Positions 2,452 through 60,555 of a DNA stretch of 64,000 nt are shown here, piece by piece. The stretch is from Neoechinorhynchus agilis. Its lineage: Eukaryota > Animalia > Acanthocephala. Made by a program: the position numbers and the translations under genes. The notes beneath the pieces were generated by a model, which saw only the letters and a list, made by a program, of their open reading frames with translations, was not told the origin of the DNA and ran no database searches. Position 1 is the stretch's first letter; every line of letters starts with the position of its first letter. The stretch spans positions 4,091,489 through 4,155,488 of the forward strand of contig CM121342.1 of NCBI GenBank assembly GCA_051530055.1, written 5' to 3'.

Positions 2452-2797
2452 ATTTGAATCGTTTTTGTGAATTGATGCATTTAATTAAATGATCTCTGAT
2501 GATAAAGTTTTCTTTGACGCTAAATGAATCGAGAGATGAATTGAATCATTTTATTTTTTATAAAAACACATCGACTGATTATTGTTAAATTTTGATTGAT
2601 TATTTTCTGTCCTCTAATGATTATTTTCAATCGGTTTGCTAAGACACTGTTTTGCGCTTCAAATTTGTTAATTTTCCCATAATGAAATTGATTGTAGCCA
2701 ATAAAGATTTATGGACGCTCAAAGAAATACTTTTTCAAATTGAAAACTATTTTATTTTGCTCTTCCACTTTTGCTTTGAAATCAATTTATACAAGCA

Positions 2798-4885
2798 TTC
2801 CGACTCCGTCATCCACCTCTCCGACCCTGGCATCAACTCTAAACTCCGGATCCGTCATCCACTTCTTCGGATCCGTCATCCACTCCAATTCCGGATCCGT
2901 CATCCACCCCTCCGACCCTGGCATCAACTCTAAACTCCGGATCCGTCATCCATTGTATTCCTCCATTCCGACTCCGTCATCCACTCTCCCGAATTTGTCA
3001 TCCACTCCAATTCCGGATCCGTCATCCACCTCTTCGGATCCGTTATCCACCTCTCCAACGTATAGCTCGGATCGTTCCACTCGAATTCCGACTCCGTCAT
3101 CCCTTCAAACACCGGATCCGTCATCCACTCCAGCAAGACGCGTCCTCCATCCACCCCTCCGGATCCGTCCTCCATCCACCCCTCCGACTCCGTCATCCAC
3201 CTCTTCGGATCCGTCATCCACTCCAATTCCGGATCCGTCATCCACCTCTTCGGATCCGTCATCCACTCCGAATTCCGACTCCGTCATCCACCCCTCCGGA
3301 TCCGTCATCCACCTCTCCGAATCCGTCATCCACTCCAATTCCGGATCCGTCATCCACCTCTCCGACTCCGTCATCCACTCCTCCGGATCCGTCATCCACC
3401 TCTCCGACTCTGTCATCAACTCCAAATCCGGATCCGTCATCCACCTCTTCGGATCCGTCATCCACCCCTCCGGATCCGTCCTCATCCACCCCTCCGGTCC
3501 GTCATCCACCTCTCCAACCCCGTCATCCACTCTACGGATCCGTCATCCACTTCTTCGGATCCGTCATCCACTCCGAATTCCGACTCCGTCATCCACCTCT
3601 CCGACCCTGGCATCAACTCTAAACTCCGGATCCGTCATCCACCTCTTCGGATCCGTCATCCACTCCAATTCCGGATCCGTCATCCACCTCTCCGACCCTG
3701 GCATCAACTCTAAACTCCGGATCCGTCATCCACCTCTTCGGATCCGTCATCCACTTCTTCGGATTTGTCATTCACTCCGAATTCCGACTCCGTCATCCAC
3801 CTCTTCGGATCCGTCATCCACTCTAATTCCGGATCCGTCATCCACCTCTTCGGATCCGTCCCCTCCAATTGGTCCGTCATCCTCTGGCATCAACTCTAAA
3901 CTCCGGATCCGTCATCCACCTCTTCGGATCCGTCATCCACTTCTTCGGATTTGTCATTCACTCCGAATTCCGACTCCGTCATCCACTTCAAACTCCGGAT
4001 TTGTCATCCACTCCAATTCCGGATCCGTCATCCACCTCTCCGACCCTGTCATCCACTCTAAACTCCGGATCCGTCATCCACTTCTCCGGATCCGTCATCC
4101 ACTCCAAATTACAGAGACCCGTCCTCCATCCACCCCTCCGGATCCGTCATCCACCTCTCCGACTCTGGCATCCACTCCAATTCCGGATCCGTCATCCACC
4201 TCTCCGACCCTGGCATCAACTCTAAACTCCGGATCCGTCATCCACCTCTTCGGATTTGTCATCCACTCCAATTCGCCGTCTCCATCCATCGGATCCGTCA
4301 TCCATCTCCGACCTGGCATCACTCAATTCCGGATCCTCATCCACCTCTTCGGATCCGTCATCCACTTCTTCGGATTTGTCATTCACTCCGAATTCCGACT
4401 CCGTCATCCACTTCAAACTCCGAATTTGTCATCCACTCCAATTCCGGATCCGTCATCCACCTCTTCGGATCCGTTATCCACCTCTCCAACCCCGTCATCC
4501 ACTCCAGACTCCGGATCCGTCATCCACTCCAATTCCGACTTCGTCATCCACCTCTTCGCTCCGTCATCCACTTCAAACACCGGATCCGTCATCCACTCCA
4601 CATTGCAGAGACGCGTCCTCCATCCACCCCTCCGGATCCGTCCTCCATCCACCCCTCCGACTCCGTCATCCACCTCTCCGGATCCGTCCTCCATCCACCT
4701 CTTCGGATCCGTCATCCACTCCGAATTCCGACTCCGTCATCCACCCCTCCGGATCCGTCGTCCACCTCTCCGACTCCGTCATCCACTCCAATTCCGGATC
4801 CGCCATCCACCTCTCCGACTCCGTCATCCACCCCTCCGGATCCGTCATCCACCTCTCCGACTCCGTCATCCGCTCTAAACCCCGG
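2798..4885. repeat. GC-rich variant-repeat minisatellite (21/24/25-nt units, core ccgtcatccac)
   Basis: Interspersed units such as ggatccgtcatccacctcttc (21 nt), ggatccgtcatccactccaattcc (24 nt) and gaccctggcatcaactctaaactcc (25 nt). The + strand is strongly C-rich. It generates low-complexity ORFs on both strands. Confidence 0.95.
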
Positions 4886-36951: not shown

Positions 36952-37470
36952 GTTTAAAGTTAAAATATCGGGATCTTTTTTCTGTGTACTGTAGACTAAA
37001 AACCACGACCGAAGATGATCGCCTAAAGGCTCGTTTTTATCACAGCATCTGACAGAGTTTCCTTCCAAGCGACTGCCATCATACCAAAACATCTTGTAGA
37101 GCAAGTGCATTTTCGAGACGACGGCAGCACGAGGTTTCCCTGCTCACACTGTGATTTTCGCAACAACAATTCAACTCCGCAGCCACCGTCGTAGACTTCA
37201 TTGCCTTCTTGGGAGACTCTATCCGGTATTTATGCGTCGTGTGGAGCGCTTTAGAGAATCAGCTTCTAATTCTGACAGACTGGCTCCGTCCTCTTTTTTT
37301 TGATATGCTACAGTTTTGTATGAGATGAATTTTAATAGTATACTATTTCTGTATGTGTCTTTAATGGAATTTGGACGCTCTGATTCACTTGTCAAAAGTG
37401 AACGTGGTCTTCTAGTCGGTGATGATGATTAAAAGTCTCTTTCATTAATTCGACTTCAGATTTTATCGAG

Positions 37471-40400
37471 TTGTTCAAACACATATCGAGTACATCAATA
37501 CGAAGGCCCAGAGGAAAATCAATCATTTATCGTGAAAGTTGTCAAACAATTAGCTGGTTGACAACGTATCCTTCAGTTCCTTATTTTTTATTTGAACCTT
37601 CTTTGACTGCCAACGTCGCCGAGGCTGCTGCTATCATCAGATCAACAGTTTGGCCCGCTCCTCAGGATAAATCTGAACTAAAAACGACTGAATTATTGGA
37701 TGACCTATCGGCTGATGGGTTCAACCTCAATGATAGACATCAAGCCAATGACATGGTGAGTTTTTCTCTCAATTGCACTTAAACTCTCACTTCTTTTTTC
37801 TTGTAGTTAAACACTGAATGGACCGAAATAGAAGAAATACAATTGGTGGGCGATAGTTCTGACTCTTACGGGATTACGATATCAGGCGGACGTAGCACCG
37901 GGGTTGTCGTGAAATCAATGCTTATTGGAGGAATCGCTGATCTTGTTAGTTAAATCTGCGAGCATTTCTGATTCTTAATTTAAAAATAGGACAACCGGTT
38001 GAGAGTTGGCGACACTATTCTTGTCGTCGGCGGTTCATCGACCAGGGGAATGAACAGTAATCAAGTCGCCAAAATGATACGAGGATCGTCTAGTTCGGTA
38101 TCGATAATAGTCGGACGACCCATTAGGGAATCGGCTAACCGGGAATCTAAGAAAATGATCATCAGAACACTTTCACTTAACGATCCAAACGTTAAAATTG
38201 AGATTATTCTGAATAAAGCAATGCAACGGGTGAGCAATTTCCCTCACACTCGATGTATTAATCAACTCGAAACCACCCATTTCAGAAGCTCAATATTCAA
38301 TTTTTGCAACTTGTGGTAACTCTCGAAAGAGGTTTTAATGGAATCGGTATAACAGCGACTAATCTAATTGATGAAAGAGGAGGTCAGTGATCGCTCCAAA
38401 GTTCACACAAAAAGAGATTATGTCTTCTATAAGTCTAATTTAAAGAAATGAGCTGTCTGTAGTGCCGGAATCACCTCTCACGGGTGCCTCATTACCACTC
38501 AATTATCTCCCTCCACACAAAAGATGGTCCCGCAGCACGGCATTTAGAGGTTGGCTTGCAAATTTGATGATTTTACAATCTGGTTCCATGTTTCGCTCTG
38601 GCGCGTCTCTAGTTTCGAATAGCATCTCAGAAATACCCCCAATCTTTCCCACCACACCCTCACTCCTCGTCCTGCTCACGATGTAATTGGATCAAGCGAA
38701 AAACAGAGCATACGAATATCAGCACACTCAATGGAAAACGTCTCGCTTGTTGCACTTGTTTTAAAACAACGCTACTAAATCACCCGGATGATCTTTGTCT
38801 CATGGGATATCCGGGTTTAAAATGCTCCATCGCACTCATATTTCTTATTGATTTCATTAGACGGCATCTCGGGAATATTCATCACAAACATCGATCCAGA
38901 AGGCTCCGCTGCTCTTGACGGCCGGGTTAAAGTATTTGACCAGATAGAAGCCATCAACGGTGTTACCGTAAGCGACGCCTCCTTCGATCAAGCAGTTGAA
39001 CTTATCAGATTGGGGCCTGATACCGTTACATTGAGACTTAAACGTTACAGCGGCAAATTCCTAAGTGATCTTAGTAGAGTTCTTGAAGGTCAGTCGATGG
39101 TTTAACCTAACCTAACTTGATCATTAAAAAAAAGGCGAATGTTGGCTTCAAATGAACTCTCTAGGAGAAGATAAGATGATTAAAAGTACGACGGACTTTA
39201 CTTCGTCGGTCCATCCAAGTCCAGTCGGTGAGGCTTTTCCTCCTCAAAACTCCCTAACACGTTAACCTCAAAGACTCTGCTCGGAGAATGAATGTATGGA
39301 AAAGGATATTCGGTTCAAATTATGACGTTCTGGTATCCGTATTCCTAATCAAATTTCAAATCACCACGGTATTTTGTGCAGATTTTAGACGTTAAAAAGT
39401 CAGATCAAGATAATCTGGGCCTAAGATTAGAAGGTACCGTTGCTTCTGATAAAGTGACTGCTCGGCATTACATAAACGACCTCCAAATTGGGAGTGTGGC
39501 GGCTACTGATGGGAAATTTAAAGTCAAAGACGAAATATTACAGGTGAGAGAATTATCTTTTCATTTTGTGGCCATGTCGTCAGTACGATCCTGCTAGTGG
39601 TTCAGGTAAATGATAAAGTGGTCATGGGCCAACCTCATTCGAATGTTATCAACATTCTTAAATCGTTACCGATTGGAAATTCGACGTTTTACGTTGCACG
39701 AAAACGGATAAAATCAAGTGCAGGACGAAGTAAGGCTTTTTGAAATGCAATTTCAAAAAAAAAGATCGCTCCTGTCATTAGGTCTTTTGAGAAAGATGTC
39801 TCCTGTAATGAAAAGGAGTGATCGAAAAAATCGATCGGTTGAATTTCGCCATAGATGTTTTGAATTATGGCGAAAAGAAAAGTTCAGTGTTGTATTAAAG
39901 ATGAGTGAGCGTGGATTGGGATTATCCTTTCTAGAATACCAAGTAAGTATCTTTGTTTTAATGATCGAAAATATACGAGTAATAAAAAATCTATAAAAAT
40001 CAAAGGACTCTCCTCTTTTCTCCAAAAGCAATTTCATCATTGTGCGACAAGTGATCAAAGGGGGAGTTGCTCATCGCAGCGGTCAAATATTGCCGGGTGA
40101 TCGACTCGTATCAGTGAATCGAATCGATACCGAAGGATTCGAACTCTCGCGTATTCTAAGCATAGTTCGATCGACTAAAGTTGGATGTGATGTGAGACTT
40201 ACGTTCAATCGAGCTTTATCCAACGTGAGATTTGCAGTGAGTACAATGGAGCATAATTGATTTTTCAATTATGCCGCTTTCTTAGACTTTTTGTTTGATT
40301 CTCATCTCAAGCGTACTTAAAATGATGTGCTTAATTGTCACTTTGGCAAAGAGCATTGTTGAATTGCCTTCAAGAAGTGGCAGTCTTTGAAAATTCCTTT

Positions 40401-43400
40401 ACCGTCGCAATTGTGCTTAATGTGCGACTTCGCAATTACTTTATAATTGTAAAAGAAATTCGATGAGCATTGTCTACTCACCTTTGTCGTGTGTACGGAT
40501 AAAAAAAGAAGGAAATACCTTCGGATTATGTTGTTTTTCGGCGATAATACATCAAACTAATAGATTATTTCTGGATAGGAAAAAGAGAGAGTAAATGTCC
40601 ATCCACAATGGCCCCGACCAAATCAAAGCCATTAAGTAAATTCATTAGTCACTGTAGAGGACTATTAGGTCTAGTGCGTTTTAGTTCTCAAGATAACCAA
40701 AAGGTTTGTTTTTTTTTAAACAATTTTATCAAAGAATATTTGCTATTCAAAAATCATTGTCTTTGTACTCACCGATCATCATCATTATGTAGGCTGATAA
40801 AGACGATGAAGACAGTGATGGTAGAATAGTATCTTCGCTGGTATCTTCGACCGGTGTTGCAGTCAGTAATCCAACGCTGCGATTTATTGAAAAATCCGAG
40901 GCTCTAAACTACTCTAAGGACAGTAGTAGATCTTCATTGACTGAAGCCGTCGCTGAAACGACAACTGCGGCTTCAGCGAAGGAGGAAGAGCGGAATGTTG
41001 TTTTGGATGCCATTACAACTGAAGCTGGTGAATGCGAGATTCTCGAGGATGTTTCGCCTGAGAGCGCAATGCAAGAAATTGTGGATGTCAGGGAAGACGG
41101 CATCAGTCACGGAAATGAAGATACTGGATCATCATTGCAAGCGACGAATGCCATCATTAGTAGAAGCAGTCAGAATATATTAGAAACTGACGAAACAGCA
41201 GCAGCAGCAGCAATAGTGGTGGAATTTGTGGATGATATTGTTAGACGAGCGATTGAACAGAGCGTCAGAGTGCCTCAAAATGCTGAGACTCGTAGAGAAT
41301 CGGCCGTTACGACTCACGTTGCGGTGACTGTGGTAAAGCTTGTTGGTATCGAGAAGGGTCTGCTGCCTGAATATGTTGACTTTGATGCCAGTCTTTATCA
41401 TAGCCCCGATACGTATAGTCTCAAAAAAATATTTCGGATTGGAATGAGTGGCTACTTGCATAAAGCAAAGATTCTCTTGTTTGGGAGAATGACAGAGTCT
41501 TTGCTGTAGAGAATCGCGACTATTTGGTGCTTCATTTCAGCGACCGAGATCAACTTTGACCAGGAATATTAGTAGACCGATAGGTGGTGAAACCATTAAT
41601 AAGAAAGTAAGCATACAATTCACATGGAAATCCCTTCTAAAGGTTTGTATTAGAGTGCAATAGTCGAAACCACTACAAAAGATGGTGGTGAGGAATCTTC
41701 TGAGCATCGCCGTCGAATTGGCCTAATCGACTATCTGGACGAAAGACGGACTGAGGACATCACTCGGTGTATAACAAGAGCATTTTTGAACAAAGATGTT
41801 GTGTTTTTCCCCATCCAATTGGAGAGAATGATTAAAATAAAAAAGAAGTTCGAGTATATGGGAGTCCAACTCGATCCTTACGTCCACGAAGGAGTCAATG
41901 GATGTCAGATCATTGACATTAAACCAGACAGTACCGTTGCAAAGGATGGTCGACTATGTTTATACGATTATATTGTCGGTCTAAACAATGAGAGTATGCG
42001 AAAAATAAGTGCAGCTCAAGCAAAAAACATTCTAAGAAGAGCTTCATTAATCTTCGGCGAAGTAAGGTAAGTTTGTAAAAAAATATGTTGAAAATAATCT
42101 CCAAGATTTGGAGCAGGGTTGTTTATATATCCAACCGAGATACTGCTGTTTACGAACGGAATTTCCACAATGGTGCATTTAGCTTACAAGCCACTCAGAG
42201 GTATGATGAGAACGGTATTTGTAACGATCGAAACAACATTTAATCGAAAAATAGTTGCACGTCGTTAAATAAAGTCAAATACTCCGTGCCCATAAAGATT
42301 ACGCGGATCGATGATAGACCTTACAGTCGATTGGTTAAAAGTCAAGATGATCTTCAAGAAATGAGAGTCGATATAAAAGGGCAGGATATATGGGGTGATC
42401 CATATACCGTTATGATCGATCGGAATGAAGATGGAGCACTGGGAGTCAGTGTTGTGGGTTCGTTTTTCTTAATTTCCGAGCTAAAATGTTCAATGTGTTT
42501 TTTTGTAGGTCGGAAAAGAAAAACGATTAATGGGAAACCCGGCGTTTCCGTTATCGTGAAAAGAATATTTCCGGGCTCTCCGGCAGCGAAATTAGCTTCA
42601 CTTCGAGTTGGAGATCGTATCGTTGAGGTTTGTTGTATATGGGCGTTTAAATTGAAAATTTTTTTTTGAAGATAAACGGAGTTAATATTGAGAACATGGA
42701 ATTAGATGAAGTCGTCGCCATGTTACGGATTGCCTCATCGCCCGTTCAGCTCTCTATTCAACGATTTAAGACTGGTAAGGACGATGACCAATTGCCGAAA
42801 CAAGAAGAGAAGTTGCATGAAGAAAAGGTTGAATTGGAAGCGCCATTGCTTGAACAGAAAGTGTCTGATCGGCATATAAAGCGGAGTTTAGACATTCCTA
42901 GTGAAAAAACGAAACCAAGGGCTCGTGTTAAAAGTGCAATTGAATCTTTTCGTCCGACTCCGGTCGTTCAGCGTACTAATCGTTACGAAGATCTAGATGG
43001 AGACATAATAGAGATTATATTGGACAGAAGAGTAGATGAGACAAGGCTTGGGCTCTCATTGGTTGGAAATGTGCAGCCTAATTTGCCGGGGATCTTTATT
43101 TGTGATATAAATCCAAATTCGCCGGCTGGATTAAGTGGGAAATTTCATTTAGGGGATGAGCTTCTGGAGGTTTGTTTCTCATTTTAAGACGATGTTTCCA
43201 TAAATTGCCTATTAGGTAAATCGCAATGTGCTTTATGGTAAATGCCATGCAAATGCCACTCCAATTATAAAAGCAATGAAGGGTGAGCGGATTCGTTTTC
43301 TTATTCACAGGTAATGCTCTAAATTTTCTGAAACCCAATCTCACACATGAGTTTAGACATCCACTTGGAGTTGAGAGGATGGCTGCTAAAGTTCCAGCAC

Positions 43401-44852
43401 AGAAGGTTTGTGGAGAATGTCTTTTAAATTGTTTCTCGGGTGCTCACATTGTTGCAAGTGCGAAAATACAAAAGTGCTGAGCGCTACTCATATTATTGAG
43501 TCGCTTGTGTGGAGCAGAAGGCGTGAGTTGTCAGGCGCTGCTGGTGGTTAAAATTGACATTCGTTTTGAGCCGGTTTCAATAGGAAGTTAATAAGGGAAT
43601 AGGCGAGACAAATAGCATTTATACCCTTTCTCGGTTTCGAACGGGATGAAGTGCTCCTTGGTGATGTTTAAGCGAATTCGCAAGTTGTTTAAGGTTAATT
43701 TAGACACTCAAAAATTATAAAAATCTCATTGAAAGACCACGATTTTATTGTTGTTGTTGTTTAGGGGCCAGCTAGTCACACCGATGAGAAGTCTGATCAA
43801 AAACTCTCTGATAATGAGTCAGAACTACGTGGTGGTGGTGGTGGTGGTGGATGGGTGAGTTTTAACTCCTCAACCGCCGTTAGCGTACGTTGTTTTGTTT
43901 GCAGGGTCTAGGATTTGTCGAGTCGGGAGATTTAAAGACTGTTCAGATTCCAAATGATATTACAGGTATTTGATTCTAATTTCGTTGTGGTCAAAACTGC
44001 TTATTAATAGAATTGGAATCAGAGGATCCGAACGATCCACGAGTGAGGCCTATCGTTATTGGATCACCAAGTGTTATATTGATTGAAAATGAAAACGACG
44101 ATATGTATTTAGGGATCAGTCTCGTAGGTGGCGTTGGGACTCCAATGGGTGCAATATTGATCCATGATATCTTCGAAAACGGATCTGCACATAAAGACGG
44201 ACGACTGATGGTTGGTGACCAGATTTTAGAAGTTAACGGAGTTGATGTAACAAAGTGCTCGAGTGAAGAATGCATGGAGCTAATTAGAGAAAGCATCAGC
44301 ACAATAGAGCTTAAAGTAATTCGCGGCCCAAATGAAGTAAGTTCATTGGAAAACGAAGACAAACTGGAAAAGATCAGCGTTGAATTGATGAAAAAACAAA
44401 ATCGAGGACTTGGTCTTAGCATAACGAAGCTCCAAAGTGGAAGAGGCGCTTATATTTCAGGAATTATTGAAGGTGGATGTGCTGAGAAGGACGGTCGTCT
44501 TATACCGGGCGATGTACTTCTCGAAGTTAATGGACGGAAAATATCGAAACTTGCATATGATGACATTGTATATTTGTTGAAGACACTCCCTTATGGGAAA
44601 GTAAATTTGAACATTGGCCGATTAAAACCAAGCCTCAATTGCAATGAAAACGTGACCACGACCGGAGCATCCAACATTACGACCACCGACTCAAGTTCAT
44701 TTCATCCTGTAAATATGCTAAGAGCAGCAGCCAGCAGTATGAAACAGCGCCATTTACGGTCTCGCTCAGCTCCTAGCCAATTCACTAGACATTTGTCTAG
44801 TCGGCTACGAAGAAGGAAAACCACTAATGTGACTCTTTTACAAGATACATAA
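37471..44852 (+). CDS. MPDZ: Multiple PDZ domain protein (MPDZ/MUPP1-PATJ family), at least 9 PDZ domains, many short introns; 5' end unresolved
   Basis: Family-diagnostic motifs: LNTEWTEIEEIQL..GGRSTGVVVK (PDZ2); WKRIFGSNYDVL..GLRLEGTV..HY (PDZ4); GLGLSFLEYQD..PGDRL (PDZ5); AQAKNILRRASLI (PDZ6); LGLSLVGN..LYGKCHANA (PDZ8); GGVGTPMGAILIHDIFENG (PDZ10); KKQNRGLGLSI (PDZ11). GT-AG introns include 37756-37806, 37945-37989, 38230-38285 and 38383-38860. First unambiguous exon starts at 37807. Confidence 0.9.
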
Positions 44853-47027
44853 ACCTTCCATCGTTTTGTATTATCATTACTATAAATAAAACCAGGATGA
44901 AGTTTTAATCAATTGATTTTAGACATTAGGAATCGAAGGAAATTTATTAGAATTTTAGGTTTTTGAATCTAGTCGGCTACGAAGAAGGAAAACCATTAAT
45001 GTGACTCTTTTACTGGATATGTAAACCTTCCATCGTTTTGTATTATCATTACAATAAATAAAACCAGGATGAAGTTTTAATCAATTGATTTTAGACATTA
45101 GAATCGAAGGAACTTTATTAGAATTTAAGGTTTTTGAATCTAGTCGGCTACGAAGAAGGAAAACCATTAATGTGACTCTTTTACTGGATATTGTAAACCT
45201 TCCATCGTTTTGTATTTTCATTACTATAAATAAAACCAGGATGAAGTTTTAATCAATTGATTTTAGACACTAGGAATCGAAGGAACTTTATTAGAATTTA
45301 AGGTTTTTCAATCTAGTCGGCTACGAAGAAGGAAAACCATTAATGTGACTCTTTTACTGGATAATGTAAACCTTCCATCGTTTTGTACATTACTATAAAT
45401 AAAACCAGGATGAAGTTTTAATCAATTGATTTTAGACACTAAGAATCGAAGGAACTTTATTAGAATTTAAGGTTTTTGAATCTAGTCGGCTACGAAGAAG
45501 GAAAACCATTAATGTGACTCTTTTACTGGATAATGTAAACCTTCCATCGTTTTGTATTTTCATTACTATAAATAAAACCAGGATGAAGTTTTAATCAATT
45601 GATTTTAGACACTAAGAATCGAAGGAACTTTATTAGAATTTAAGGTTTTTGAATCTAGTCGGCTACGAAGAAGGAAAACCATTAATGTGACTCTTTTACT
45701 GGATATTGTAAACCTTCCATCGTTTTGTATTTTCATTACTATAAATAAAACCAGGATGAAGTTTTAATCAATTGATTTTAGACACTACGAATCGAAGGAA
45801 CTTTATTAGAATTTAAGGTTTTTGAATCTAGTCGGCTACGAAGAAGGAAAACCATTAATGTGACTCTTTTACTGGATATTGTAAACCTTCCATCGTTTTG
45901 TATTATCATTACTATAAATAAAACCAGGATGAAGTTTTAATCAATTGATTTTGGACACTAGGAATCGAAGGAACTTTATTAGAATTTAAGGTTTTTGAAT
46001 CTAGTCGGCTACGAAGAAGGAAAACCATTAATGTGACTCTTTTACTGGATATTGTAAACCTTCCATCGTTTTTATTTTCATTACTATAAATAAAACCAGG
46101 TAAAGTTTTAATCAATTGATTTTAGACACTAGAATCGAAGGAACTTTATTAGAATTTAAGGTTTTTGAATCTAGTCGGCTACGAAGAAGGAAAACCATTA
46201 ATGTGACTCTTTTACTGGATATTGTAAACCTTCCATCGTTTTGTATTATCATTACTATAAATAAAACCAGGATAAAGTTTTAATCAATTGATTTTAGACA
46301 CTAAGAATCGAAGGAACTTTATTAGAATTTAAGGTTTTTGAATCTAGTCGGCTACGAAGAAGGAAAACCATTAATGTGACTCTTTTACTGGATATTGTAA
46401 ACCTTCCATCGTTTTGTATTATCATTACTATAAATAAAACCAGGATGAAGTTTTAATCAATTGATTTTAGACACTAAGAATCGAAGGAACTTTATTAGAA
46501 TTTAAGGTTTTTGAATCTAGTCGGCTACGAAGAAGGAAAACCATTAATGTGACTCTTTTACTGGATATTGTAAACCTTCCATCGTTTTGTATTTTCATTA
46601 CTATAAATAAAACCAGGATAAAGTTTTAATCAATTGATTTTAGACACTAAGAATCGAAGGAACTTTATTAGAATTTAAGGTTTTTGAATCTAGTCGGCTA
46701 CGAAGAAGGAAAACCATTAATGTGACTCTTTTACTGGATATTGTAAACCTTCCATCGTTTTGTATTATTTAATAAAATAAAACCAGGATGAAGTTTTAAT
46801 CAATTGATTTTGGACACTAAGAATCGAAGGAACTTTATTAGAATTTAAGGTTTTTGAATCTAGTCGGCTACGAAGAAGGAAAACCATTAATGTGACTCTT
46901 TTACTGGATATTGTAAACCTTCCATCGTTTTGTATTTTCATTACTATAAATAAAACCAGGATAAAGTTTTAATCAATTGATTTTAGACATTAGGAATCGA
47001 AGGAACTTTATTAGAATTTAAGGTTTT
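44796..47027. repeat. Tandem array, ~172-bp unit, 13 copies; first copy overlaps the MPDZ stop codon
   Basis: tctagtcggctacgaagaagg at 44796, 44968, 45139, 45312, 45481, 45654, 45827, 46000, 46170, 46343, 46516, 46689 and 46859. Confidence 0.97.
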
Positions 47028-47436
47028 TAGTCTCCTCTTAGCAATGTGATCGAAATCCACTTTAATTATTAATCTTATTATTCAAAATGGGAATGAAACG
47101 ATAAAGACGTTTCATCGTTGTGTGAAAAGGCACTAATTGAAATTTTCAATTTTCGCCGTTCTCGATTTCTAGGATCAAAATGTAATCTCTGACGGCCGAG
47201 TTTTCATTGTCCATTTTAGTAAACAAATTTCGTGTGCTGTTGAGTAAACGTAGATTTTAAAGGAAGCAAAGAAATTTAGATTCTTACATTTTCATCTGTT
47301 ACATAAACGATTTTCCAAGCAGTTTAGAATTTAATTATCTGAGATATTTTACAGTGTTTCCGTGGCGGTATTTCGATCCACCAGCAAAACTTTTTTACAA
47401 ACACTCAATAAACTTATCTGTTTTTTGATGGTCACG

Positions 47437-47775
47437 ATATTTCGGTTTATTTTCAATTTCTTTGTAATATTCAATTCTACATTGAAGAACTTGAATAAGA
47501 GGTAGTTTTTTAAATTAAAAATATTTCTCATTATCAGAATATTTCGGTTTATTTTCAATTTCTTTGTAATATTCAATTCTACGTTGAAGAACTTGAATAA
47601 GAGGTATTTTTTAAATTAAAAATATTTCTCATTATCAGAATATTTCGGTTTATTTTCAATTTCTTTGTAATATTCAATTCTTCATTGAAGAACTTGAATA
47701 AGAGGTAGTTTTTTAAATTAAAAATATTTCTCATTATCAGAATATTTGGGTTTATTTTCATCTTCGTAATATTTA
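47437..47775. repeat. Short tandem array, ~102-bp unit, ~3.3 copies
   Basis: atatttcggtttattttc at 47437, 47539 and 47640, with a degenerate copy at 47742. Confidence 0.9.
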
Positions 47776-47920
47776 ATTGAAAAATTTGGTCTACACGTCT
47801 GAGTTGTTTTATTTATGGAGTTTGGTAAACAAGTTCGTGTTTTGTATGTCAAACGAAGGAAGCCAAGAAATTTGAATTTTAGGTTTTCTTTTTAATAAAG
47901 AATCACGATAAGGTGGTTTG

Positions 47921-49654
47921 ATGTTTTCGTCGCAACAATTTCCGTTTTACTCAGTTTCAGACGTTCTCTTCATTGCATTTATCCTTTCCGTTACAATGAA
48001 ACGAATCCTACTTTTGATTTTATTGTTATTAGTTTTCCACTTTGGAATTTCTTATTTCTATCGCTCAAACCGAACTATTAATAAATCCGTTTTTAAGCGT
48101 ATTGATAAAATACGTCTTTTTGAAGCGAAGACTTACTTGAAGAATGCTTCATTGAGTCCTAAAAAGGAATACAATTCACCTGAGGGACGCTACGTTGTTA
48201 TTATTGTATCGAGTAGGCGACAGAAAGTTCAATACCAATATCTAACTCAAACCATAGCATCGGCTCATAAATGCCTTTCAATGCTTCAAAAAATTAACTT
48301 TGAGATCTGGGTGGTCTTAGATGGTTCCGATGGCAATGAAGTACTCCAGGGACTGCCATCTCTACCATACAATGTAAATGAATGATCTCAAACGTCGCAG
48401 AATATAATCTCTTGGACCTCTAACGAATTGCGTTACTTTATTTTTAAAAAAATAATAATTTCTTTTTCGATTTAATATGTCCAGTTTAGAGCGTCTCTTT
48501 TTTAGAATCAGCAAACTAAGATTCGAAATGTTTTTAATAAAATTTTATTTACTAGGTGAATAATGACGGAAAAATTATAAGATTTTTTTTTGTTAAATCC
48601 GATATTGCGAAATTAATAATGATTATTGTTGAATTAGCGGACTTGATAAATTGTAAAGAAAGTGCTCTTGGTGATGAGAAGTTATAAGCAACCTAAGAAG
48701 GTTCTACAATTAATTTCTATTTCCCATAAAAGTCTTTTTTAAGCGCTGTCTCGAATGCTTTCAGTATATTCCATATCCATCAATTATTAAAATGGTTTCG
48801 AACTAAATAGGAAACGTTCAAACTGCATAATTATTTAAATCTTAAACACCGGATACCCGAAATTGAAATTTTTTTAGGAAGTTCTACAATTTGGTTTTTT
48901 TAAGGAGGATAAAATATAATTGCGGCCTTATGAGACCACTCATAAAAATTATGTTTCATTAAATATCTCGTCTGGATCCTTTTCATTACACAAAAAGGAA
49001 CTTCTTCTTTACATTGCGACTCTCCGTTTTGCTGCTTCAAAGATCGATAAACGCAAAACTGAAGCATTGTTGATATTGGAAGATGATGTTATATCGACTT
49101 TTTCAAATTGGATACACGTGAACCACCTCGTAATGAGAAGAAGGATCTTTGAAGAAAATCCAAATCTTATAATGGTACGATTATTTTATCCGGAAAAGTA
49201 TTGCAACTACTCAATGGAACTTCATTGCATACTTGAATTAATGGCTACTATAGTCCTTGTCGCTATGGTTCTATTCAAATACTTTGGAAAATATTTTTCA
49301 ACATTCATTGTGTTAATGATGGTTGATTTGTTTATTTTAACTGGTAGACCGAGGATGGAAAAACTAAGATATATTCATTCCGCTTTGTTGAGATTGAGAT
49401 TATCTCCAGGATGTTGCACACCAGCGATTCTAATGAGACCCGACTCAGGACTCATGTTGAAGTTAGCACATTTCATGAAGGATTCTATAAACTTAAGCAT
49501 TCCTAAGGATTTGGTAATCGACAAGTTTACTCAGCCTTGTTCAGGATCTTTAACCGTTGAACCAAATCTTTTCTACCACATTGGATATGTATCCACTCTT
49601 GGAACGATACGATCTTTGACTGAGTTTTTAAATAATCCGGCTCATATTTTTTAA
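47921..49654 (+). CDS. PGAP4: GPI-N-acetylgalactosamine transferase PGAP4/TMEM246 homolog; exons ~47921(or 47996)-48373 and ~48935-49654
   Basis: Ordered motifs match the PGAP4 family: TM-HFGISYFY, YVVIIVSSRRQ..YLTQ, LILEDD, RLFYPEK, GR..LR..PGCCTPAILM, KD, VEPNLFYHIGYVSTL. Donor gtaaat at 48374. Phase-0 acceptor at 48934 is tentative. Confidence 0.88.
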
Positions 49655-51691
49655 TAAAAAAATTGCAGTTGCGATTTAAACTCATTTCTAAACGGAACGA
49701 TACGATCTTTGACTGAGTTTTTTAATAATCCAGCTCATATTTTTTAATAAAAAAATTGCAGTTGTGATTTAAACTCATTTCTAAACGGAACGATACGATC
49801 TTTGACTGAGTTTTTAAATAATCCGGCTCATATTTTTTAATAAAAAAATTGCAGTTGCGATTTAAACTCATTTCTAAACGGAACGATCTTTGACTGAGTT
49901 TTTAAATAATCCGGCTCATATTTTTTAATAAAAAAATTGCAGTTGCGATTTAAACTCATTTCTAAACGGAACGATACGATCTTTGACTGAGTTTTTAAAT
50001 AATCCGGCTCATATTTTTTAATAAAAAAATTGCAGTTGCGATTTAAACTCATTTCTAAACGAACGATACGATCTTTGACTGATTTTTTAAATAATCCGGC
50101 TCATATTTTTTAATAAAAAAATTGCAGTTGCGATTTAAACTCATTTCTAAACGGAACGATCTTTGACTGAGTTTTTAAATAATCCGGCTCATATTTTTTA
50201 ATAAAAAAATTGCAGTTGCGATTTAAACTCATTTCTAAACGGAACGATCTTTGACTGAGTTTTTAAATAATCCGGCTCATATTTTTTAATAAAAAAATTG
50301 CAGTTGCGATTTAAACTCATTTCTAAACGGAACGATACGATCTTTGACTGAGTTTTTAAATAATCCGGCTCATATTTTTTAATAAAAAAATTGCAGTTGC
50401 GATTTAAACTCATTTCTAAACGGAACGATCTTTGACTGAGTTTTTAAATAATCCGGCTCATATTTTTTAATAAAAAAATTGCAGTTGCGATTTAAACTCA
50501 TTTCTAAACGGAACGATACGATCTTTGACTGAGTTTTTAAATAATCCGGCTCATATTTTTTAATAAAAAAATTGCAGTTGCGATTTAAACTCATTTCTAA
50601 ACGGAACGATCTTTGACTGAGTTTTTAAATAATCCGGCTCATATTTTTTAATAAAAAAATTGCAGTTGCGATTTAAACTCATTTCTAAACGGAACGATAC
50701 GATCTTTGACTGAGTTTTTAAATAATCCGGCTCATATTTTTTAATAAAAAAATTGCAGTTGCGATTTAAACTCATTTCTAAACGAACGATCTTTGACTGA
50801 GTTTTTAAATAATCCGGCTCATATTTTTTAATAAAAAAATTGCAGTTGCGATTTAAACTCATTTCTAAACGGAACGATACGATCTTTGACTGAGTTTTTA
50901 AATAATCCGGCTCATATTTTTTAATAAAAAATTGCAGTTGCGATTTAAACTCATTTCTAAACGGAACGATCTTTGACTGAGTTTTTAAATAATCCGGCTC
51001 ATATTTTTTAATAAAAAAATTGCAGTTGCGATTTAAACTCATTTCTAAACGGAACGATACGATCTTTGACTGAGTTTTTAAATAATCCGGCTCATATTTT
51101 TTAATAAAAAAATTGCAGTTGCGATTTAAACTCATTTCTAAACGAACGATACGATCTTTGACTGAGTTTTTAAATAATCCGGCTCATATTTTTTAATAAA
51201 AAAATTGCAGTTGCGATTTAAACTCATTTCTAAACGGAACGATCTTTGACTGAGTTTTTAAATAATCCGGCTCATATTTTTTAATAAAAAAATTGCAGTT
51301 GCGATTTAAACTCATTTCTAAACGGAACGATACGATCTTTGACTGAGTTTTTAAATAATCCGGCTCATATTTTTTAATAAAAAAATTGCAGTTGCGATTT
51401 AAACTCATTTCTAAACGACGAACGATCTTTGACTGAGTTTTTAAATAATCCGGCTCATATTTTTTAATAAAAAAATTGCAGTTGCGATTTAAACTCATTT
51501 CTAAACGGAACGATACGATCTTTGACTGAGTTTTTAAATAATCCGGCTCATATTTTTTAATAAAAAAATTGCAGTTGCGATTTAAACTCATTTCTAAACG
51601 GAACGATACGATCTTTGACTGAGTTTTTAAATAATCCGGCTCATATTTTTTAATAAAAAAATTGCAGTTGTGATTTAAACTCATTTCTAAA
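49601..51691. repeat. Tandem array of 93/88-bp units (~23 copies, 181-bp dimer); first copy overlaps the PGAP4 stop codon
   Basis: ggaacgat at 49601, 49694, 49787, 49880 and 49968. Identical spurious ORFs at 50198, 50379 and 50560 are offset by 181 bp. Confidence 0.97.
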
Positions 51692-52600
51692 CATAGATTT
51701 TTTTTGTCTAGATTGTTTGAATGGTTAATTTCTGACTTTTTATACTTTTAATTCTTAAGCCATAAACAAGGACTTGAAATATTAGTCAATTCGAGGGAAA
51801 ATCTCTATCGGAATGGTAAATTTTGACTTGTAATGAAAACAAGAGAAGGCGAGGTTTCCTCTCTTTCCAAATATTTCGCTAACAATAAAACGATTTTCAC
51901 CACAAGTTAAAACTTCTCAGTTACATATCTCGAATAATAAAAAAAGAACATCAAAATTAGATATTCATATCCTTAAGAACTACGAGTCTGAAAATCACAT
52001 TTCTTGAGTTTTCATTAAAAAGTAAAACTTGACAGTTAAACGCTTTCCGAGAACGACAGTTTGTTTCTTTACACAATGAAGCCGAACTCCAAAACGAATT
52101 AAAGTAGCGATAATCTTTCAAATTCAAGTCAAAAAAAGGGAACCTAATGAACGAACAGAAATTAATCTGATTTGTTTTCTAATATGAAATTGGAACGTCT
52201 TTAATCTTAAAGATTGTTCATGTTCAAAAAGTTAAGAAAGTCTTGCCGATATCCTCTATTTCACGAAAATTGATTAAATTATAAATGATTGATTTTTTGT
52301 AAATCGAAAGGTCGATGATTTAATGGAAATATGCATTCTCGGTCACATTCCTGATCGGAATTTCGGTTTGTTCAAATTAAAGGGCAAGTAAATTATCAGT
52401 TTGATGATTCTTAATAGCAACGCTTAAATCGATCAATGGAGCTTTTTAAACTTCCCTTAAAAGTTCAGCCATTTGCGATGATGACGGTTCGATGAAAAAG
52501 AAACTCAGCTGAATTGTAGAATTCTACTCATTTTCATTGTTCATTCTTGGTGGATGCCTTAAAGCGGAAATTCGTTCACTTATCCTTTAAGGGTTTTTTT

Positions 52601-57217: not shown

Positions 57218-57454
57218 ATTATCTGCCGCTCATTTGTCGCCTATCGACTAAATGACCTTAATCATCTTTATCAAACAATCCATCGTACAAAATGTACCGA
57301 AAAAACTCATAGAGAAAATAAAAGCTCTTTCAGAAGCAAAATTACATTGTTTTTATTTTGGACGTGCCAAACGCCATTTGTCGTAGTCTCTAATTTTTAA
57401 TATCGATATTTTTTGGAGCAAAAAATGCGCTTTTTTTCAATTTATATTGCTTTT

Positions 57455-59342
57455 GCTTCGGGGCTAAGGCCTCAGCACCTAAAGGACTTTACAACTGGTG
57501 AAGCAGCTTTCTCCTTAGAAAGGTCGCTTTCTCGGTTAGTCGACCGCCTGACTGGAGAGGATTTGAATCTCGTCGTAAAAAAACCTATTTTTCGAAGAAT
57601 CATTACATGCCCTCACAAAAAAAGAAGGTGGGATTCGTCCAATCGCCGTATCACGCCGACTTGCAGGAAAAATTCTGAAAACCGGACAGCAGCTTCGTCC
57701 AGTCCAACTGGGTTGCTGCGGGGCGGAAGCTATTGTCCACTCGCTCCGAAACTTCACTGCAAGGAGCTCAGAGTCGTGCTTGATTCTTAAGTGTGATTTT
57801 TCAGAATGCCTTTAACTCTCTCAATAGAGAAACCATGTTCTGCGCAATTAGGGATCACGCACCAGAAGCCTTCCAGTATTTTCTCAATGCCTTCGCGACG
57901 GCGACTCCTTTGCTTTTCGAAGACCACCTCATTTGGTCCGAAAGAGGAGTGCAGCAAGGAGATCCCCTCGGTCCAATCGCATTCTCCCTAACAGTAAATC
58001 CAATAGCGCATTCTCTCGATTCCTGCTTCAACGCTTGGTACTTGGATGACGCTACGCTCGGAGGTGATCCCTCCGTTGTACTGCGCGATTTGGAGACGCT
58101 GATTAGGGAGACCTCGAAGATGGGCATTGAGCTCAATGCTGGAAAATGTGAGCTCCTTGTATTGAATATTGGAGACGCCGCCAAAGTCAAAGAACTAATG
58201 GCTGGGTTCGAGGCCGTAGCTCCAGGCCTGAAACTCGTGACTCGGGAACAACTCAGCCTCCTGGGCAGTTGCGTCTTCGATTCAAATGTGGAAGATGAGA
58301 TCGGCCATATCATACCGAAACTTTCGTTGCTGTGCGATAGGGTGAGCGCTCTCTGGACTCATGAAGCGTTATTTCTGATAAAGAACGCGCTCTTCATCCC
58401 CAAATTATTGTACAAGGTTCGCACAGCAACATTTTTCAAACATAAGGAAGGATTGGCAAAGCTCGACGACAAGGTGAGGGCTTGTCTCGAGCGTATTTTA
58501 AATGTCCAGCTCCCAGATGAGGCGTGGCGACAAGCTACTTTGCCAGTATCATCTGGGGGATTGGGAATTCGTTTGAGGGGAGCCTATCAGTCTCGAAGAA
58601 CATTTTGAAGGAAAAGTTGTGTCTTGACCGGGATTTCGTGGTGGCGGTTGAAGAATGGTGCCAGCAGACCGGCGCTAACCATGTTTCCGTGAATGGCCTC
58701 AGACAGTCGATCTGGGACGGAAATCTTGTCGCGAGAGCTCACAGCTCTCTACTTTCCGGTTTTCGCGATGGGGTCGTCCGAGCTAGATTGTTCACGAGAA
58801 TCTGGGGCGTGGTTGGAGGCTATTCCTCTGGCATCTGTGGGAACTCTTCTCACTGATGAGGTAACGAGGATCGCAGTATCCTTAAGACTTGGTCTCCCGA
58901 TATGCACGCCCCATCGCTGTCGATGTGGGTCTTTGGTTGATGCTTTCGGGCGACACGGTCTCGTCTGCCGAAAGTCAGGAGGAAGGTTTTCACGCCATTC
59001 TGAAATCAATAACGCAATTTCTCGGGCGTTGAGAACATCGAACTTCCCCAACATCCTGGAACCCGCCCACCTTTGTCGACTAGACGGCCGTAGGCCCGAT
59101 GGAATTTCGGTCTTCCCGTGGCGGGAGGGCAAATGCCTTCTCTGGGACGCCACGTCCCTCGCAGCCAGCAACATCCGCTACTCCCTCGAAATCGCTGGTG
59201 GTGCCGCCAGTGCAGCGGAAGGGAGGAAAATACGGAAATATCTTCACTTATCGAGGGCTCACTATTTTGTCCCCTTCGGAGTAGTGGAGCGTTTGGCAGC
59301 TCGGCACTCGCGACAAAATATCTCGCCGGCAGTACAACGAGG
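57455..59342 (+). mobile_element. Decayed, 5'-truncated non-LTR retrotransposon with RT and C-terminal CCHC + restriction-like endonuclease (CRE-clade-like)
   Basis: GLRPQHLKD; ALTKKEGGIRPIAV..RRL; LKCDFQNAFNS (frameshifted); QQGDPLGP; WYLDD; GGLGIR; CRCG..D..G.H..C...RH; DGRRPDG..PW..GKCLLWDAT; terminal ISPAVQRG. At least three frameshifts and apparent small in-frame deletions. Confidence 0.88.
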
Positions 59343-59344
59343 CC

Positions 59345-60555
59345 CTAGGAAGGATAGAAGCTAAGATTTTGGGGACGGTGGTGACAAAAATCTTTTATTA
59401 ATTCTTTTTTTTCGATTAAATGCAAATTTACAATTGGTTGAAGTGACGCAGCGGAAATTCATTCTTTTAAATATTTTTTTTTCGAAAACAGCCACATTCT
59501 AATAGAACTTACGTAAATTTATTGAGACTATCGTCATCATCGACTAATTCGCAAGTCACACTTCCTACATTAGCACATTTGTGACCATCGTCATTTCCCA
59601 TTTTCCCATTTAACTTATTAATCTTTTCTGCCAATAACAATATAGTTGAACAAAAGTCTGGATCATTTAGTTTTTCTTTAACAACGTCTTTACATTGATC
59701 GCTTTTGCTGCACGAATCGATACTTGCCATAAAGTCATTAGTCAATCGTGGTGCTGCTGCTCGGTAATGATGATATCGTTCATTTCTCTGACTTCCAGAA
59801 TGTATCGAATCGAACTGATAATGATGAATATCGCTATTTTGTCTCTTGACTTTACTTTGATCGTCGTAAATTCGTTCAATGTATCCTGAATTTACTCTTG
59901 ATTTACTCATTGCAGTTTGCACTGCTTTAGTCGTATAATTCTTATATTGAACTTTAGAGAGTTGTGTTCGTGGGGATGCAATGGAACAAAGACTACTATT
60001 ATCTTCGATTGAATGGTCGGAATTATCGGGAATATCGGTATAAAACCGATCTTTCGTTTCATTTCCTTTAAATCTAGGATGCCTTCGTCGTCTTTGGACA
60101 GGAACGTAGACTTCAGTGGCACCGTTTCGCTGTAAAACCCTAGGTTGTGCATCTCGTGGATCGTTTGAATCAAGTTCAAAATAATGAACGCTATGAACGA
60201 TTTTGCCTCCACATGGCTTCTCATTTCTTCTCAACTCACTTAATTTCCCAATATTTAAACCAAACATGGGATTCATTATTGTGTTTTCGTTTGCTGGAAT
60301 CCGGTGTCCAACATTGAACCGTTGCGGCTGCTGAGGCAAGGGTTCAATGTGTTGGTAGATGGTTTTATGTTGGGACGAGAACATCGCAAGATGAGTTTCG
60401 TGGAGTTGCTTGCTTTTAAGCTACTCGCTTTTTTCTAACGTGAGGTCACATGACTTTTCCTTTAGTAGTCTTCGGAGGTTAATCGTCGTTTGACAATGCG
60501 AATTTGCCCTCGTGTCTTTAATCGAGGTGTTCATTTCTAGTCCCAGCTTCTCGAG
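59345..60555 (-). CDS. Orphan multi-exon gene (exons 60555-60455, 60412-59513, 59463-59432, 59391-59345); 5' end unresolved
   Basis: The 291-codon ORF 60384-59509 ends exactly at a gtaagt donor. Introns of 42, 49 and 40 nt keep the frame to a TAG at 59347-59345. No domain recognised. Confidence 0.65.

Follow-up and report, generated by a model that had tools for sequence, protein, structure and literature searches.

A tandem array covering the 3' end of a multi-PDZ gene in Neoechinorhynchus agilis: probable amplification in place

The multi-PDZ gene and the array at its 3' end

The stretch of DNA analyzed here (the window) is 64 kb of chromosome CM121342.1 of the acanthocephalan Neoechinorhynchus agilis (GCA_051530055.1), with window position 1 corresponding to record position 4091489 and positions 37996-59654 being 100% identical to the record, and it contains a gene for a multi-PDZ protein whose last codons, stop codon, and candidate poly(A) signal lie in the first unit of a tandem array of 173-bp units. 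The N. agilis genome spans 46.2 Mb with 13,655 predicted genes; it was assembled with MaSuRCA as a hybrid of Illumina and Nanopore R9.4 reads from about 50 pooled worms, with little HiFi and Hi-C data and with reads shorter than 5 kb dropped beforehand, and it was annotated with BRAKER guided by mRNA-seq (PMC12690905). An earlier note, made on the letters of this stretch, had drawn attention to the array, and its claims are taken up below where the results bear on them. The features of the gene and of the array are as follows.

37325-44852, + strand: multi-PDZ (MPDZ/PATJ-like) gene, probably a single one, as delimited by two adjoining NCBI models, PDZ matches, and collinear tblastn
37325-40260, + strand: upstream NCBI model, 640 aa, multi-PDZ
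40608-44852, + strand: ACOME3_005516, 1090 aa, NCBI "hypothetical protein," an RNA-seq-guided BRAKER model with the C-terminus ...TTNVTLLQDT
44011-44852, + strand: terminal coding exon, an open reading frame (ORF) with two PDZ domains (Pfam PDZ, E=1e-30) and then a 76-residue tail rich in Ser/Thr and in Arg
44796-47028, + strand: 13 tandem units of 173 bp, all complete except the last, which is without the 3-nt joint GAA (Tandem Repeats Finder, unit alignment, sharp edges)
44796-44967, + strand: copy 1, the working gene end, with the last 18 codons, the stop, AATAAA, and 78 nt past AATAAA; the most divergent unit
44850-44852, + strand: TAA stop of the PDZ gene, within copy 1, from the ORF and also the end of the NCBI model
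44885-44890, + strand: AATAAA, candidate poly(A) signal 33 nt past the stop (in other genes of the window, AATAAA or ATTAAA lies 11-43 nt past the stop)
44968-45138, + strand: copy 2, an intermediate unit with an in-frame TAA at the equivalent place (unit alignment)
45139-47028, + strand: copies 3-13, with a common 1-nt insertion that shifts the stop out of frame (ORFs, unit alignment)

The top named relatives of the gene in the homology search are inaD-like or multiple PDZ domain proteins; PDZ domains number five in the 1090-aa model, and the 640-aa model upstream adds at least three. Since a single 1662-aa protein of the rotifer Adineta steineri spans both models collinearly in tblastn, the annotation has probably cut one MPDZ/PATJ-like gene into these two; the gene is also collinear with a 2230-aa homologue. 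The predicted product belongs among the MPDZ/PATJ(INADL) multi-PDZ proteins, so that the name "MPDZ" given to the gene by the earlier note is right at the family level (MPDZ/PATJ) and goes too far beyond it. No match to the L27 domain, which such proteins carry at the N-terminus, was obtained in the ORF pieces tried, the first exons lying outside the reconstruction.

The terminal exon starts at the acceptor ...ttaatag/AATTGG, where the protein P0056 reads ...DITELESEDP, and the plus-strand ORF from 44013 to 44852 finishes with ...SSRLRRRKTTNVTLLQDT and the TAA. Canonical MPDZ/PATJ proteins carry an additional PDZ domain at the C-terminus. In tblastn with five MPDZ/INADL homologues, some of them with the canonical last PDZ, no PDZ-coding sequence was found 3' of 44663 on either strand, and the candidate of a further coding exon downstream was rejected on this basis. 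Furthermore, the RNA-seq-guided model proposes no splicing to an exon beyond 44852, and the next annotated gene begins at 47996. Position 44852 is, in this way, the predicted gene end. Since the rotifer homologue likewise terminates straight after the PDZ domain that is the last one in N. agilis, the absence of the final C-terminal PDZ is, judged from these sequences, an old lineage trait that was not caused by the array.

Tandem Repeats Finder reported a single array at 44796-47028 (period 173, 13.0 copies, 96% matches, score 4151), and the anchor TCTAGTCGGCTACG occurs 13 times, at 44796, 44968, 45139, 45312, 45481, 45654, 45827, 46000, 46170, 46343, 46516, 46689, and 46859, which splits the array into units of 169-173 bp. 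A 33-mer derived from the unit has 13 matches in the window, against 0 expected from shuffled sequence. These results bear out the 13 tandem copies that the earlier note had placed at the 3' end of the PDZ gene; its start at 44796 is correct, and its end at 47027 falls one base short of 47028. The array runs from TCTAGTC... to ...AAGGTTTTT and forms a single 2.2-kb block between two expressed-type genes, with no further copy in the window. It begins, in codon phase, 57 nt before the end of the PDZ-gene stop; both this offset and the AATAAA at 44885 had been given correctly, as the ORF and the motif positions confirm.

Copy 1 stands apart from the rest, with 9-15 differences from the other units in the unit alignment, compared to interior units that are mostly 1-7 of 173 columns apart. 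Eight columns are private to it, six of which lie at 44824-44849, with 44824 C, 44842-44843 AA, and 44848-44849 CA among its private bases; it has ACCACT where the others have ACCATT, and CAAGATACATAA where copy 2 has CTGGATATGTAA and copies 3-13 have CTGGATA(T/A)TGTAA. As for the protein ends, copy 2 would read ...TINVTLLLDM and then a stop, and copies 3-13 would read ...LLLDIVNLPSFCIFITINKTRMKF and then a stop; an interior-type unit (ACCATT...CTGGATATTGTAA) joined to the unique sequence up to 44795 would encode the longer C-terminus. The unit alignment agrees here with the earlier note, which had listed the differences of the coding copy and both alternative C-termini. AATAAA is present in 12 of the 13 units, with AAATAAAA in its place in copy 12. 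The T of GACATT is common to the edge copies 1, 2, and 13, compared to a C in the interior units; a G three bases after this T is shared by copies 1 and 13, but it is also found in the interior copies 3 and 7. The unit sequences indicate that the interior units are homogenized among themselves and that the edge units 1, 2, and 13 hold older states.

Evidence on the origin of the array

We consider it likely that the array is young and private to this locus, that it belongs to the minisatellite or variable number tandem repeat (VNTR) type, and that it arose in the N. agilis lineage by neutral amplification, in place, of the 3' end of the gene. The edges of the array are informative in this respect. 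The 60 nt before 44796 and the sequence after 47028 have no homology to the unit except for TTTG or a T-run, and both edges stand at an equal phase, the array being made of 13 whole units minus the joint. Whole units and same-phase edges are what is expected from the repeated duplication of one single-copy segment; in an older array cut by the gene, same-phase edges would occur by chance in only about 4% of cases (7 of 173 phases). Moreover, outside the array the 62 kb left in the window contain no copy of the 173-bp unit, the nine further arrays there have monomers unrelated to it, and JGI metagenome contigs have no match to it. Neither the terminal-exon ORF nor two ORFs of the array had an exact match when looked up for independent assemblies or transcripts.

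An outside point of reference is given by the orthologue in Pomphorhynchus laevis, KAI0984495.1, which was found by an exhaustive protein search. It is 43% identical to the N. agilis terminal exon in an alignment that goes through the tail to residue 271 of 279, where RSRSAPSQFTRHLSSRLRRRKTT is aligned with KSCSAPQRFNQSIAKRATVDKST. From the SAP motif onward to the C-terminus, the similarity is far above that of shuffles (p=0.0002), and 27 codons follow this motif in P. laevis and 25 in N. agilis, so that the two proteins end within 2 residues of each other. In the 22-kb locus of P. laevis (L004), the 3' end is present once, and no tandem repeats of period >32 were found. Judged by this comparison, the array came later than the gene end. 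The earlier note had asked for the C-terminus to be compared with that of a relative, and the outcome is a homologous tail of near-equal length with no comparable array.

Two further observations concern the tails of the two proteins. In P. laevis an intron lies right before the conserved SCSAPQRF of the tail (L004 12195-12250); N. agilis is without it, and its last 279 codons form one exon. The interior units of the array would read ...LLLDIVNL... (45180-45200 and equivalents in units 3-13), and the P. laevis protein ends with ...TFMVNL and a stop (L004 12320-12347). The likeness of the ...IVNL of the interior copies to this terminal ...MVNL is probably due to chance (p=0.45), and we do not retain it.

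It is possible to hypothesize the following course of events. A single-copy segment of about 170 bp, comprising the final 57 nt of the coding sequence (CDS) of the multi-PDZ gene with its stop, a short 3' untranslated region (UTR) with AATAAA, and about 80 nt of downstream DNA, would have been duplicated head-to-tail. This first duplication may have used the short T-run or TTTG microhomology at the two breakpoints, leaving a joint of 2-3 nt, and replication slippage together with unequal sister-chromatid exchange could then have led to the expansion to 13 units. Such a duplication would be harmless, with unit 1 still following the unique CDS with its full stop and terminator and with the gene unchanged; the other 12 units would be inert extra copies downstream. 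In this account the mechanism of duplication, the neutrality, and the use of the poly(A) signals are all what we infer. The array most likely has no effect on the gene, and existing knowledge of the function of MPDZ/PATJ proteins is unaltered by it.

Private arrays across the window and at the neighboring gene

The window contains ten arrays of mutually unrelated, private monomers (units of 21 to 231 bp), which together make up 50.1% of its length. All-against-all blastn found no sharing among them, and no monomer matched the window outside its own array; a dispersed family, or sequence shared among these arrays, is ruled out within the window by this search. Two more arrays, with units of 328 and 202 bp, lie just beyond the right end of the window (L002 446-2035 and 2757-3586). 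Downstream of the 173-bp array the features are the following.

47437-47778, no strand assigned: separate 102-bp array of 3.4 copies, 218 bp before the ATG of the next gene and unrelated to the 173-bp unit (Tandem Repeats Finder)
47996-49654, + strand: next gene, ACOME3_005517, 344 aa, hypothetical protein with no Pfam domain (NCBI model)
49601-51692, + strand: 93-bp array of exactly 23 units, unit 1 of which holds the last 17 codons of ACOME3_005517, the stop, and an overlapping AATAAA

The 93-bp array repeats the arrangement seen at the PDZ gene, with edges that are sharp and in phase and with the last 54 nt of the ACOME3_005517 CDS (17 codons and the stop) included in it. Its copy 1 is identical to the consensus, and for this reason the array is probably younger than the 173-bp one or fully homogenized. 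The C-terminus of ACOME3_005517 offers no second test of polarity, the gene having no homologue but itself in the protein collection.

On the simplest reading, arrays would originate wherever the DNA is unconstrained and come to occupy the space between genes. They stop short of promoters on the 5' side of genes (six start codons have arrays 78-376 bp away) and are free to overlap the coding end on the 3' side, where they would be tolerated, the gene staying whole in the first unit. For units of 90-230 bp, the start of an array lying across a terminator necessarily falls close to the stop, hence the similar offsets of 57 and 54 nt at the two genes. The 173-bp array is thus not special, given ten private arrays on half of the window and the same arrangement at the next gene, and the special character that the earlier note had implied is undercut by both. 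It is one case of a regional, and perhaps genome-wide, habit of private intergenic arrays.

What is new is the specific example, its kind being the known class of minisatellite-like arrays. The more interesting lead appears to be that unrelated private arrays make up half of these 64 kb in an animal genome of very small size, with none of period >32 at the P. laevis locus; such a density bears on how intergenic DNA is gained and lost in a compact parasite genome. The tandem arrays of N. agilis are not mentioned in the genome papers PMC12690905 and PMC12256650. More generally, a tandem duplication spanning the 3' boundary of a gene would cost nothing, so that arrays can creep into the CDS from the downstream side. 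For annotators this means that masking repeats before gene prediction can clip true terminal codons, and that spare copies of a gene end may draw mis-mapped RNA-seq reads and lead to false calls of 3' UTRs or alternative poly(A) sites.

Alternative explanations and comparison with known systems

Several points weigh against neutral amplification in place. Taken alone, the 18 array-encoded residues are not significantly similar to the P. laevis C-terminus (p=0.70, shuffle test), so that the case for their age is made by the length match, expected by chance in about 9% of cases, and by the conserved motif immediately before them. The privacy of the monomer is a statement about the 64-kb window. 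Copy number was read from the assembly, and in a hybrid assembly based mainly on Nanopore R9.4 reads of pooled worms it may be inexact, as may some unit-specific indels; the poly(A) sites and the polymorphism are predicted. As regards neutrality, the private differences of copy 1 are concentrated in its last 9 codons and all of them change amino acids, a clustering suggestive of selection on the C-terminus resisting homogenization. It has p of about 0.02 when counted by column and of about 0.2 when adjacent changes are taken as single events, and selection on copy 1 is not upheld as a firm conclusion.

The lack of similarity of the 18 residues can also be read in favor of the opposite polarity, which the earlier note had offered as its alternative: the PDZ frame, having lost its own end, would have run into an older array, and the last 18 codons would be satellite-derived. 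It is compatible with such a capture that, in random DNA of such composition, 18 codons before a stop turn up with a probability of about 0.25 and that the final PDZ of canonical MPDZ/PATJ proteins is missing from the gene. This loss is, however, shared with the rotifer homologue and hence old, and in P. laevis, without any array, homology of the tail extends as far as the array boundary and the protein stops at nearly the same residue. Capture predicts neither whole units nor same-phase edges, and the monomer is absent from the rest of the window; we regard capture as improbable, amplification in place being the better supported of the two origins considered by the earlier note, on account of the in-phase edges, the window-private monomer, and the P. 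laevis tail without an array. Even more doubtful is an error of the hybrid long-read assembly as the source of the array or of most of its copies. Noisy Nanopore R9.4 reads, pooled worms, very little HiFi, and a polishing that is unreliable inside repeats would all favor such an artifact, but the reads retained for assembly, at 5 kb or more, exceed the 2.2-kb array in length, the units differ by structured substitutions and indels between edge and interior, and ten unrelated arrays in the window behave alike.

A third explanation concerns function and is compatible with an origin in place. Repeated stop-plus-AATAAA ends would be used or selected, as a fail-safe or as alternative poly(A) sites blocking read-through to the co-oriented gene 3.1 kb downstream, or else some process linked to termination would favor duplications of 3' ends. 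The stop and AATAAA are in fact amplified in two neighboring co-oriented genes, 13 and 23 times, an array begins 138 bp beyond the stop of a third gene just past the window, and the genome is merely 46.2 Mb for its 13,655 genes. On the other hand, 5' ends are abutted by arrays equally closely, at the 78-376 bp given above, and the closeness of terminator-spanning arrays to the stop follows of necessity from the size of their units. AATAAA is frequent anyway in this AT-rich DNA, at 2.8 per kb, and it is absent from the largest array (92 bp, about 10 kb) as well as from the 187-bp array, so that an enrichment of AATAAA in arrays, tried as evidence for stacked terminators, proved inconsistent. 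We hold this reading, drawn from sequence as it is, to be unlikely, if somewhat less so than capture.

Equally unlikely, in our view, is its broader form, in which the amplification of a module of stop codon and poly(A) signal would be recurrent in N. agilis, mechanistically driven or selected, with the PDZ gene and its neighbor as two of a genome-wide class. If it held, the amplification would be triggered at transcription termination, or its products would be kept as terminator stacks insulating close co-oriented genes in a 46-Mb genome, and unequal exchange would offer polymorphic C-termini (...LLQDT versus ...LLLDIVNLPSFCIFITINKTRMKF, each before a stop).

The sequence of the 173-bp unit gives no sign of function. 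A structured RNA was rejected, with no Rfam match at E<=0.1 across 44000-52000, and the unit folds no better than its shuffles (z=0.68). A hairpin or palindrome as the trigger of slippage was likewise rejected, given this value and the inverted repeats in all nine monomers, the longest of which do not exceed those in the non-array DNA of the window; no palindrome is common to the monomers. At most, the 12 extra AATAAA could be candidate back-up termination sites between the co-oriented genes, and the PDZ protein could acquire an interior-type C-terminus by unequal exchange inside the initial 53 nt of the unit; stacked poly(A) sites and a swap of C-termini had both been suggested by the earlier note.

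Amplification in place finds its closest counterpart in the minisatellites and VNTRs at gene 3' ends, of which the 40-bp VNTR in the 3' UTR of human SLC6A3/DAT1 is an example. The resemblance lies in a locus-private, head-to-tail array of a short unit at the 3' end of a gene, shaped by slippage or unequal exchange and expected to vary in copy number. Different from these, the N. agilis unit is longer (173 bp) and holds terminal codons, stop, and candidate poly(A) signal, so that each unit is a potential complete gene end. The D4Z4 macrosatellite of DUX4 has units of 3.3 kb, each with a whole ORF, and its poly(A) signal lies outside the array, at the distal edge. In both systems the position of the unit relative to the unique flank decides whether a complete polyadenylated mRNA is possible. 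However, the 173-bp units hold only the last 18 codons, in place of a complete ORF in a kilobase unit, only the proximal one is joined to the gene, and an AATAAA goes with each unit. Macrosatellites of this kind have been surveyed elsewhere (PMC3018141).

With partial tandem gene duplications over a 3' boundary, the N. agilis array shares breakpoints inside the gene and past the terminator and an intact, hence neutral, upstream copy; such duplications are usually one kilobase-scale event, whereas here a very short segment was amplified 13-fold. Satellite DNA in the strict sense, as in the Acanthocephalus satellitome (PMC11758010), is likewise tandem and AT-rich with nucleosome-scale units, but it forms long arrays of high abundance, as a rule at several loci or in heterochromatin. 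In the window we found a single 2.2-kb array of this unit, at one euchromatic genic locus and with neighboring arrays that each have their own monomer, and the term "satellite" used by the earlier note is too strong for it.

Two other parts of the window deserve mention. At 2740-4878, on the + strand, a degenerate 21-bp array (also readable as 45, 66, or 91 bp) contains an open 712-codon frame rich in Pro, Ser, and Thr (...PSSTSPDPSST...), with no Pfam match. At 57413-59364, on the + strand, a G+C-richer region that is not annotated as a gene contains broken frames, one of them with RVT_1 (E=8e-10), and looks like a decayed retrotransposon.

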